DNA of 63,727 bases, filler included, from Octopus bimaculoides (GCF_001194135.2; 7 parts of 7 records of this genome joined end to end with filler, not necessarily neighbours in it); one strand, 5' to 3'. Numbered from the whole stretch's first letter, positions 62,167 to 63,727 are shown. The notes: a model not told the origin generated them from the letters alone. Numbers and translations: made by a program.

Positions 62167-62437
62167 NNNNNNNNNNNNNNNNNNNNNNNNNNNNNNNNNN
62201 NNNNNNNNNNTTAATTAATTAANNNNNNNNNNNNNNNNNNNNNNNNNNNNNNNNNNNNNNNNNNNNATGTGTAACAGAAAGATGTCAATTACTGGGGAAA
62301 AGTTTGTAAAATGGCATGCGACCATGCTGTTAGATGTATCAGATTGTTCAGGCAGCTGTGTTGTGTCCATGTGGGGTATTCGAAATTAGTGAGTATGTGT
62401 AGGTTGAGAAATGACGTCACTACACCAGATGCCCACA

Positions 62438-62739
62438 GGCATCTGGCGTAGTGGTTAAGAGCGTGGGCTACTAACCCCAAGATTCTGAATTCGNNNNNNN
62501 NNNNNNNNNNNNNNNNNNNNNNNNNNNNNNNNNNNNNNNNNNNNNNNNNNNNNNNNNNNNNNNNNNNNNNNNNNNNNNNNNNNNNNNNNNNNNNNNNNNN
62601 NNNNNNNNNNNNNNNNNNNNNNNNNNNNNNNNNNNNNNNNNNNNNNNNNNNNNNNNNNNNNNNNNNNNNNNNNNNNNNNNNNNNNNNNNNNNNNATAATG
62701 TAAATAATGTACATAATTCCTCATCTCTTAAATATAGAA
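62438..62739 (+). mobile_element. Second copy of the tRNA-head element (family H); middle is in an N gap
   Basis: A-box TGGCGTAGTGG (62444-62454), GGGCTACTAACCCCAAGATTCTGA, then after 201 N the same tail as 9917-9956. Confidence 0.8.
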
Positions 62740-62784
62740 ATGGCGTCAAAGTTTGTTTATTATTATCATCACTGTTATTGTTGT

Positions 62785-63075
62785 TCATAAGGTGGTGAGC
62801 TGGCAGAATCGTTACCATGCCAGGCAAAATGCTTGGTAGCATTTTGTCCATCTTTACATTCTGAGTTCAAATTCTGCCTTGGCTGACTCTNNNNNNNNNN
62901 TTTTGTCCATCTTTACATTCTGAGTTCAAATTCTGCCTTGGCTGACTCTGCCTTTCATCCTTATGGGGTTGATAAAATAAGAACCAGTTGAACAACTGGA
63001 GTCAATGTAATTGGCTTAGTCCCCACCACTCATATTTGCTGACCTTGTAACAAAATTTGAAACCATTATTATTAT
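62785..63075 (+). mobile_element. SINE family M, with sequence duplicated across a 10-N gap
   Basis: AAGGTGGTGAGCTGGCAGAATCGTT head; TTTTGTCCATC...GGCTGACTCT occurs on both sides of the gap. Confidence 0.8.
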
Positions 63076-63185
63076 CAATGGTTGTTGATAATAATTATTA
63101 TTATCAACATTATTATTATCATCATTATTAATGTTGTTGTTATTGCTGTTGCTATTAATATTATTATTACTTTCCTCTTTTACAG

Positions 63186-63640
63186 GTTATCACTGCAAGT
63201 TTTACAATGATGGATGCTCATCGGATGCAGAATGCTGCAGTGGAAGATGCATGCAGAAGCATGAAGGCACAAACTTTCGGTGCACTCCAAGTGCACTGCA
63301 TCAGCCATGCGTTTATGACTACCATTGCAGTGATGGCTTGGAGTGCTGTGAAAAGACTTATAACTGTTGCTCCCCCATCTGGAAAGACTGCATGTATTCC
63401 GTTGACTGCTGTGACCCAGAACACAAGTGTATCCATGTGAAGGGCTTCACATATAAGCGATGCCTGGTGTCAGCAACTGCTGATGTCATCCATAGCACGT
63501 CACTGCCAATCTTCTCATCACTGGTTGCTTCTTGTTTCGTCTTTCTCATTACCTTCCTTCGCATGCCTCTTCATTCTTCTGCTAATGTGAACGAAAGACG
63601 GAAGCCTTCTGCTGGTCATTACAATCGATGGAGCTGCTAA
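63186..63640 (+). CDS. Probable terminal coding exon of an uncharacterised Cys-rich protein: two knottin (ICK)-like domains, a middle 5-Cys module and a hydrophobic membrane-anchor segment
   Basis: Polypyrimidine acceptor TTTCCTCTTTTACAG ends at 63185 (phase 1); 17 Cys before the anchor; C-x6-C-x5-CC-x3-C-x10-C and C-x6-C-x5-CC-x5-C-x10-C; LPIFSSLVASCFVFLITFL hydrophobic stretch. The upstream MLLLLL part of the listed ORF is microsatellite/intron. Confidence 0.8.
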
Positions 63641-63727
63641 AAATAGCCCCAGTAACCAAATTTCTCTCATAGCATCTCCTACCAATCTTAAAGGAAGCTG
63701 GACACATTGAATAATGTAGTCCTACAC

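Follow-up and report, generated by a model that had tools for sequence, protein, structure and literature searches.

The knottin scaffold is the one used by gating-modifier toxins to engage membrane-embedded channel domains. Knottins are best known as toxins, inhibitors or antagonists that are secreted, and their roles include protease inhibition, antimicrobial action and receptor antagonism. Scorpion calcins (maurocalcin, imperatoxin A) and spider gating-modifier toxins are secreted venom components of 30-40 residues, made of a single domain with hypervariable loops, and the calcins are basic. The double-knot toxins DkTx and pi-hexatoxin-Hi1a carry two knottin modules in one chain; they are secreted, belong to venom and have no anchor. 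Among the Ly6/uPAR prototoxins (lynx1, Drosophila sleepless/quiver), whose fold is the three-finger fold, small disulfide-rich, toxin-like domains are attached to the membrane through a short stalk with an anchor and act in cis on channels or receptors. Real ICK toxins are carried by engineered GPI-tethered toxins, which act in cis on channels and receptors (PMC2577701, PMC7056315). The literature searched contained no account of a knottin naturally tethered by a GPI or transmembrane anchor.

We analysed a window of 63,727 nucleotides, filler included, of Octopus bimaculoides DNA (GCF_001194135.2; seven parts joined end to end with filler). A preliminary description of this window had placed at 63186-63640 one exon carrying two ICK-pattern domains around a middle cysteine module, and both the coordinates and the cysteine spacings agreed with our own. 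The surrounding piece (62267-63727), eukaryotic and AT-rich, contains N-gaps, sequence resembling interspersed repeats and an (ATT)n microsatellite. The exon, its parts and the acceptor lie on the plus strand. A 3' splice acceptor with its polypyrimidine tract is present at 63167-63185, with the AG at 63184-63185 (ttactttcctcttttacag/G, the slash marking the phase-1 junction). The reading frame opens at 63186 on the second base of a Gly codon, hence the preceding intron is a phase 1 intron. The terminal coding exon (63186-63640) encodes 151 residues, which make up the whole mature protein, and is closed by a TAA at 63638-63640. This stop codon had been said to overlap a downstream repeat; within the piece 62267-63727, no repeat copy was found over 63638-63727.

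The ectodomain (GYHC...KRCL) is 94 residues long, is slightly acidic rather than cationic by residue count, and contains 17 cysteines, at positions 4, 11, 17, 18, 22, 33, 42, 48, 54, 55, 61, 62, 69, 75, 76, 82 and 93. Module 1 (63194-63283, Cys4-Cys33) has the ICK-pattern spacing C-6-C-5-CC-3-C-10-C, and module 3 (63368-63463, Cys62-Cys93), which includes a conserved Trp66, the spacing C-6-C-5-CC-5-C-10-C. Between them lies a reduced, knottin-like module 2 (63308-63367; Cys42, 48, 54, 55 and 61; C-5-C-5-CC-5-C), in which the codon of Cys55 (TGT, 63347-63349) renders the cysteine count odd. The ectodomain is followed by a Ser/Ala/Thr-rich stalk of 12 residues (VSATADVIHSTS, 63467-63502), which occupies the GPI omega region of the relatives according to the family alignment and the C-terminal survey. 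Next comes a hydrophobic membrane segment (LPIFSSLVASCFVFLITFL, 63503-63559), which is the best 19-residue Kyte-Doolittle window (mean 2.28). The chain ends with a polar, probably cytoplasmic tail (RMPLHSSANVNERRKPSAGHYNRWSC, 63560-63637), which begins with Arg, contains RRK and is net positive by residue count. The translation gives 26 residues for this tail, instead of the 27 previously counted.

A word-indexed search yielded a single relative, P0002, encoded by the Logan contig L001 (1.8 kb of cuttlefish genomic DNA). The DNA similarity between the octopus locus and this contig starts precisely at the acceptor AG and collapses past the last Cys-Leu. Over the 94 codons of the ectodomain, the two proteins are 80% identical and all 17 cysteines are kept (17/17), while codon position 3 is only 50% identical. 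As pN is 0.117 and pS 0.88, a saturated value (pN/pS about 0.13), the comparison indicates that the ectodomain is under strong purifying selection across a deep divergence. When sequences of two Sepia taxa were compared, six synonymous and no nonsynonymous changes were counted in the ectodomain, and three and two, respectively, in the anchor and tail.

The P0002 cluster includes transcript-derived proteins, one of which (P0081) starts with MEKVFCCVLIGGIALLPVAVLG/FHCKF. P0081 and P0077 are present in at least 65 Logan runs (P0077: 65 collection blocks); the runs that were traceable are Sepia esculenta RNA-seq, and the gene is expressed in these transcriptomes of whole animals under stress or immune challenge. 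The transcript contigs (L004-L016) match the genomic contig solely from the acceptor onward. Their upstream part is another sequence, which encodes a signal peptide and ends in phase 1 (...GTTTTAG/GTTTCC). The cuttlefish genomic contig and the spliced Sepia transcripts both use the junction codon seen in octopus. The cuttlefish ortholog is therefore expressed and spliced at exactly the predicted point. Oyster LOC111115097 (L002) has the same structure, with a signal-peptide exon of 26 codons, a phase-1 intron and an exon opening at the same Gly codon, three residues ahead of Cys1. The phase-1 intron after a signal-peptide exon, which had been proposed from the octopus DNA, is thus borne out by the spliced Sepia transcripts and by the oyster gene, and its place three codons ahead of Cys1 is common to the octopus acceptor, the oyster gene and the Sepia transcripts. 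The Sepia esculenta contigs L004-L016 extend for about 1.18 kb upstream of the start codon and end in a (GA)n repeat; this extension may represent either a 5' UTR of unusual length or a join made during assembly. Intron-retaining Sepia contigs are also present (P0079, P0083).

An exhaustive HMMER profile search of 1.84 billion cluster representatives (cut-off E <= 0.001) gave 44 matches, 33 of them at E <= 1e-10, and about 30 covered the whole 94-residue profile. The full-length proteins measure 134-216 residues, mostly 140-180, and match the profile from 1 to 94 with E values of 1e-15 to 1e-26. All named members are molluscan. They come from gastropods (Biomphalaria glabrata LOC106054865, Bulinus, Physella, Bradybaena, Candidula, Batillaria, Nucella, Babylonia) and from bivalves (Mactra, Crassostrea virginica LOC111115097, Mytilus). 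Their common plan starts with a signal peptide, continues with a 16-Cys domain and closes with a C-terminus that is hydrophobic. Sixteen cysteines are the norm, each invariant or at least 90% conserved in the 29-member alignments (A3, A4), and the loop motifs SNEGC, HxGTNxRC, YHCE, CCSPYW, DCCDPxHVC and GFxYKRCL are kept across molluscan classes. The preservation of 17/17 cysteines in cuttlefish at saturated synonymous sites, together with 16 near-invariant ones in 29 members, is far beyond chance.

The closest comparison is provided by LOC106054865, LOC111115097, Physella acuta LOC131937179 and Babylonia areolata LOC143290103, which are 43-55% identical to the octopus ectodomain and share with it the 16 cysteines, the motifs and the overall layout, the intron position being shown for oyster. 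In contrast to these homologs, most of which end soon after the hydrophobic segment, the octopus and Sepia proteins have Cys55 and a polar tail of 23-26 residues. Judged by sequence, the octopus protein is the cephalopod ortholog of an unnamed family found so far only in molluscs. Clear orthology to a characterised family would have spoken against the preliminary description; none was found, since all the named relatives are labelled uncharacterized or hypothetical. In Pfam, no family reached threshold for the octopus protein and no model of the molluscan family was found, and the literature searched contained no paper on the family or its named LOC genes. Some members depart from the common plan: the Physella gene (locus L003) has an additional intron after DYHCQ, P0024 has a Ser/Thr/Pro-rich repeat ahead of the domain, Babylonia P0050 has a basic tail past the hydrophobic stretch, and P0009, without a hydrophobic C-terminus, may be secreted.

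At position 55, cysteine is found in octopus and Sepia only, and the 27 other aligned members have mostly Gly, with a few Ser or Arg. The odd cysteine is thus a Gly55-to-Cys substitution common to both cephalopod sequences and kept since the octopod/cuttlefish split. The odd count, 17, had been taken as a hint of dimerisation. The count itself is correct, yet Cys55 is limited to two cephalopod sequences in a family that normally has 16 cysteines, so that this residue is no dimerisation feature of the family as a whole.

The fold was examined with AlphaFold. A model built from two sequences was unusable (pLDDT 42) and was replaced by a run on 29 family members, which reached a pLDDT of 95 and a pTM of 0.81. 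In this model, the same DSSP pattern (bridge, bridge, 3-10 turn, bridge, hairpin) occurs three times, at residues ~4-33, 35-63 and 62-93, so that the middle module appears as a third, reduced copy of the secondary-structure pattern of modules 1 and 3. Modules 1 and 3 have the six-Cys C-C-CC-C-C pattern with toxin-like spacings, for which the cysteine spacing and the superposition of the model suggest a putative knot, where the pairing would be I-IV, II-V and III-VI and the third disulfide would thread the ring. The middle module lacks the six-Cys knottin pattern, with four cysteines in most family members and five in both cephalopod sequences. Internal triplication was also considered at the sequence level: hhalign gave a weak match between modules 1 and 3 (P = 6.6e-4 over 13 columns) and module 2 was undetectable, so that a shared origin of the modules is not established.

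A Foldseek search of the PDB gave no whole-length match (best TMq 0.32), and many of its rows were single knottins superposed at 0.9-2.4 Å over 27-35 residues. These neighbours include SGTx1 (rmsd 0.9 Å), hanatoxin (0.9 Å) and maurocalcin 1c6w (2.2 Å, TMt 0.61), as well as lambda-MeuKTx-1, psalmotoxin, EETI-II, SOTI-III, nemertide, a conotoxin and the two-domain Hi1a. A predicted fold other than the ICK fold would have contradicted the preliminary description, and the superposition of a model of this confidence on solved knottins points the other way. In addition, the family profile matched maurocalcin 1c6w (E 0.0087, residues 4-34), imperatoxin A (E 0.029) and omega-grammotoxin 1koz (residues 61-82). 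Sub-threshold matches to toxin families were obtained in Pfam for the scorpion calcin family Toxin_27 (PF08099; 10 of 29 members, all below the 25-bit gathering threshold, best E 0.0014, P0066 at 13.3 bits) and for the spider ion-channel inhibitory toxins of Toxin_12 (PF07740; 14 of 29, best E 1.3e-4, none at threshold) and Toxin_29 (PF08116; 11 of 29, the octopus protein scoring 19-20 bits against a cut-off of 25). Conotoxin gene superfamilies, including the O-superfamily, are defined by their conserved signal peptide and propeptide; no conotoxin family of Pfam was matched by the octopus protein or the 29 members. The knottin-like character of the two flanking domains was thus upheld by the spacings, the toxin matches and the model, and the picture of two domains has to be completed by the reduced third one.

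Other folds were considered and rejected. The C-terminal two thirds have a granulin-like spacing, but Granulin (PF00396), the Pfam model of a 12-Cys motif, gave no match at E <= 1 in the 29 members, and no granulin structure was among the best 50 Foldseek rows. The colipase, Dickkopf and prokineticin fold had the top Foldseek E-values (0.1-0.3), yet TM was 0.30-0.35 and rmsd 9-12 Å. For Ly6/uPAR, whose LU domain has a pattern of 8-10 cysteines, there was no LU-domain match in Pfam and no three-finger structure among the Foldseek matches. By the tests applied, the octopus protein falls outside the calcin, huwentoxin, granulin, colipase/Dkk and Ly6 families, and its toxin resemblance is one of fold only. 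The Biomphalaria ortholog (UniRef A0A2C9KBR6 and A0A2C9KBR7) bears in UniProt the automatic name 'Granulins domain-containing protein'. When the model (md8e6d0ff93fc) was searched against BFVD with Foldseek, the best viral matches were uncharacterized pithovirus 'transmembrane proteins' and iridovirus proteins (TMq up to 0.52), which suggests that tandem knottin-like repeats occur in membrane proteins of giant viruses; single modules were matched by baculovirus conotoxin-like Ctl proteins.

The C-terminal membrane tether announced in the preliminary description is supported by the hydrophobicity of the 19-residue segment and by its position: in nearly every member of the family, a hydrophobic stretch lies 8-30 residues past the last cysteine. 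About 29 distinct clusters end at most nine residues past this stretch and have an S/A/G-rich site directly after RCL. The ancestral tether of the family thus looks like a GPI-attachment signal, as far as can be read from these termini. A minority have longer tails, and one member (P0009) has no hydrophobic end. A GPI signal places the hydrophobic stretch at the extreme C-terminus, as is the case in most relatives; in octopus, 26 polar residues follow it. According to the positive-inside rule, positive residues are expected on the cytoplasmic side, and hydrophilic C-terminal extensions block GPI processing. The net-positive tail of 26 residues, taken with these two rules, favours a type I single-pass transmembrane anchor over a GPI anchor in cephalopods, a probable reading drawn from a hydropathy heuristic. 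No splice donor able to remove the polar tail looked good by eye. In Sepia, the mRNA reading frame retains the hydrophobic segment plus a polar tail of 23-26 residues, depending on the chosen end of the segment, whose sequence is unrelated to that of the octopus tail. Under either type of anchor, the ectodomain sits about a dozen residues from the membrane.

The first exon of the octopus gene was sought in the 0.9 kb upstream of the acceptor, where no significant match to the Sepia signal peptide or exon-1 DNA was obtained. One candidate lies at 62334-62388, about 0.8 kb upstream of the acceptor, with an ATG, MYQIVQAAVLCPCGVFEI and a GTGAGT donor in phase 1. Having no similarity to the Sepia signal exon, this candidate is speculative and could have arisen by chance. 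The neighbouring DNA shows further features. A perfect 49-nt direct duplication (62842-62890 and 62901-62949) flanks a 10-N gap and is more readily seen as an artefact of assembly than as biology. A longer N-run occupies 62494-62694 and cuts a tRNA-like stretch; this stretch and the 16-nt inverted repeat adjoining it (94% complementary) lie in 62418-62497. Sequence at about 62790-63040 resembles what we take to be an abundant octopus SINE. ARAGORN and Rfam scans of the piece 62267-63727 gave nothing credible.

The octopus gene already exists in public collections under another form, a protein of 169 residues (P0001) that starts at ATG 63131 and begins with MLLLLLLLLILLLLSSFTG; as it is found in UniRef and eukprot, it represents a public single-exon gene model. 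If this model were right, the octopus copy would be a single-exon gene with a poly-Leu signal peptide, and the MLLLLLLLLILLLLSSFTG stretch behind the in-frame ATG would indeed be workable as such. However, this N-terminus is the in-frame translation of the intronic (ATT)n/(GTT)n microsatellite at 63094-63169 (TRF, ORF list), which lies in the pyrimidine tract of a strong polypyrimidine-AG acceptor context. Moreover, the Sepia mRNA is spliced at the same point although an in-frame upstream ORF exists, the oyster carries the same intron, and the conservation between octopus and cuttlefish starts right at the acceptor. Because of the splicing in Sepia and the intron shared with oyster, we judge the N-terminus of P0001 to be very probably an annotation artefact, and a single-exon octopus gene to be unlikely; the public gene model is to be corrected to this extent. 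Lack of a transcript had been named as grounds for abandoning the whole description. Sepia transcripts settle this point for the family, but homology searches of the protein collection gave no transcript-derived protein for the octopus gene, and a further search for cephalopod orthologs returned only Sepia, the octopus protein itself and P0113 (45% identity). Together with the single member of the P0001 cluster, this could mean that the octopus locus carries a copy that is not expressed or has recently decayed. As the collection is patchy for cephalopods, the missing transcript is weak evidence; the ORF is intact with every cysteine retained and has been under strong purifying selection relative to Sepia at saturated synonymous divergence, so that we regard such a copy as quite improbable.

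Two other explanations concern the product rather than the gene. Since most family members have ends like classical GPI signals, P0009 has no hydrophobic end at all and an S/A-rich omega-like region is kept in octopus (VSATAD), the cephalopod protein might be GPI-anchored or shed, and act after release as a soluble ligand or antagonist, comparable to agouti or Dickkopf, instead of a resident cis modulator; colipase and Dkk are also among the top Foldseek rows. Those matches are poor, though (TM ~0.3, rmsd 9-12 Å), and the polar extensions of 23-26 residues in octopus and Sepia, that of Sepia being present in the mRNA, would block GPI processing, the positive charge of the octopus one being as expected for a cytoplasmic tail. 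A shed or GPI-anchored product is consequently considered unlikely. Less probable still is a Cys-rich effector of innate immunity or antimicrobial defence, or a protease inhibitor, exposed at the surface of epithelia or haemocytes. Antimicrobial peptides and protease inhibitors both include knottins, EETI-II and SOTI-III being among the Foldseek neighbours, and expression was seen in stress and immune-challenge transcriptomes of Sepia. Against such a role, immune effectors usually diversify, whereas the present loops are conserved across classes at a pN/pS about 0.13; the octopus ectodomain is slightly acidic, and membrane anchoring is unusual for antimicrobial peptides.

We consider it likely that the octopus protein is a membrane-held knottin array rather than a venom toxin, and that it would serve most likely as a cis modulator of a channel or receptor. 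An upstream signal-peptide exon would be joined via the phase-1 intron to the exon described here, giving a two-exon gene. Its product would be a small type I membrane protein whose 94-residue ectodomain forms a rigid array of two ICK-pattern modules around the reduced one. The array would stand on the 12-residue stalk just above the membrane, followed by the 19-residue membrane segment and the basic tail of 26 residues. As the relatives are mostly GPI-like and the cephalopod proteins transmembrane-like, the conserved property is the display of a knottin array at the cell surface. From the rigid, conserved, disulfide-rich array, its tether and the constraint on its loops, we infer a surface binding module, which may bind a conserved partner on its own or a touching membrane; loop conservation across classes fits such a partner, unlike the loops of hypervariable venom knottins. 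Because the stalk is very short and the scaffold is a knottin, the most attractive role is that of a modulator acting in cis on an ion channel or receptor, or of an auxiliary subunit to one, comparable to lynx1/Ly6 proteins or engineered tethered toxins; the alternative would be a short-range ligand. The preliminary description had proposed a lynx1-like modulator or a ligand, which by analogy is plausible. Loop conservation, the slightly acidic ectodomain and the anchoring argue against a venom or antimicrobial role.

Comparison with the known systems places the octopus protein as follows. Module 1 has the same spacing as the scorpion calcins (C-6-C-5-CC-3-C-10-C) and shares CCSxxC...GTNxxRC with them, and module 3 is similar to CxxxWxxCxxxxDCC, the opening part of grammotoxin and huwentoxin-type toxins. 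In contrast to these single-domain venom peptides, the octopus protein is a fused array of three modules with a membrane anchor, phylum-wide loop conservation and a slightly acidic charge. With DkTx and Hi1a it shares tandem knottin modules in one chain, and Hi1a (2n8f) appears among the Foldseek rows; however, the whole-length superposition is poor, with an rmsd of 10.7 Å, and there is no detectable homology with these anchorless pairs. A membrane-bound triple-knottin array conserved across molluscs would be a new architecture for the knottin fold, and the molluscan family gives a non-venom comparator for the origin of ICK toxins. The octopus protein itself is a candidate for an endogenous regulator at the cell surface, in animals whose nervous systems are elaborate. 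It is conceivable, if rather doubtful, that the family is a natural and ancient counterpart of tethered toxins, namely an auxiliary cis modulator of a voltage- or ligand-gated channel on molluscan excitable cells, which would be an analogue of lynx1 on another fold and perhaps the source of the scaffold of molluscan ICK venom peptides. The likeness to the Ly6/uPAR prototoxins would be one of analogy only: small disulfide-rich domains, a short stalk and an anchor belong to both, the cis action is known for the prototoxins, and the knottin fold of the octopus protein differs from their three-finger fold. The tethered ICK toxins, for their part, are man-made.
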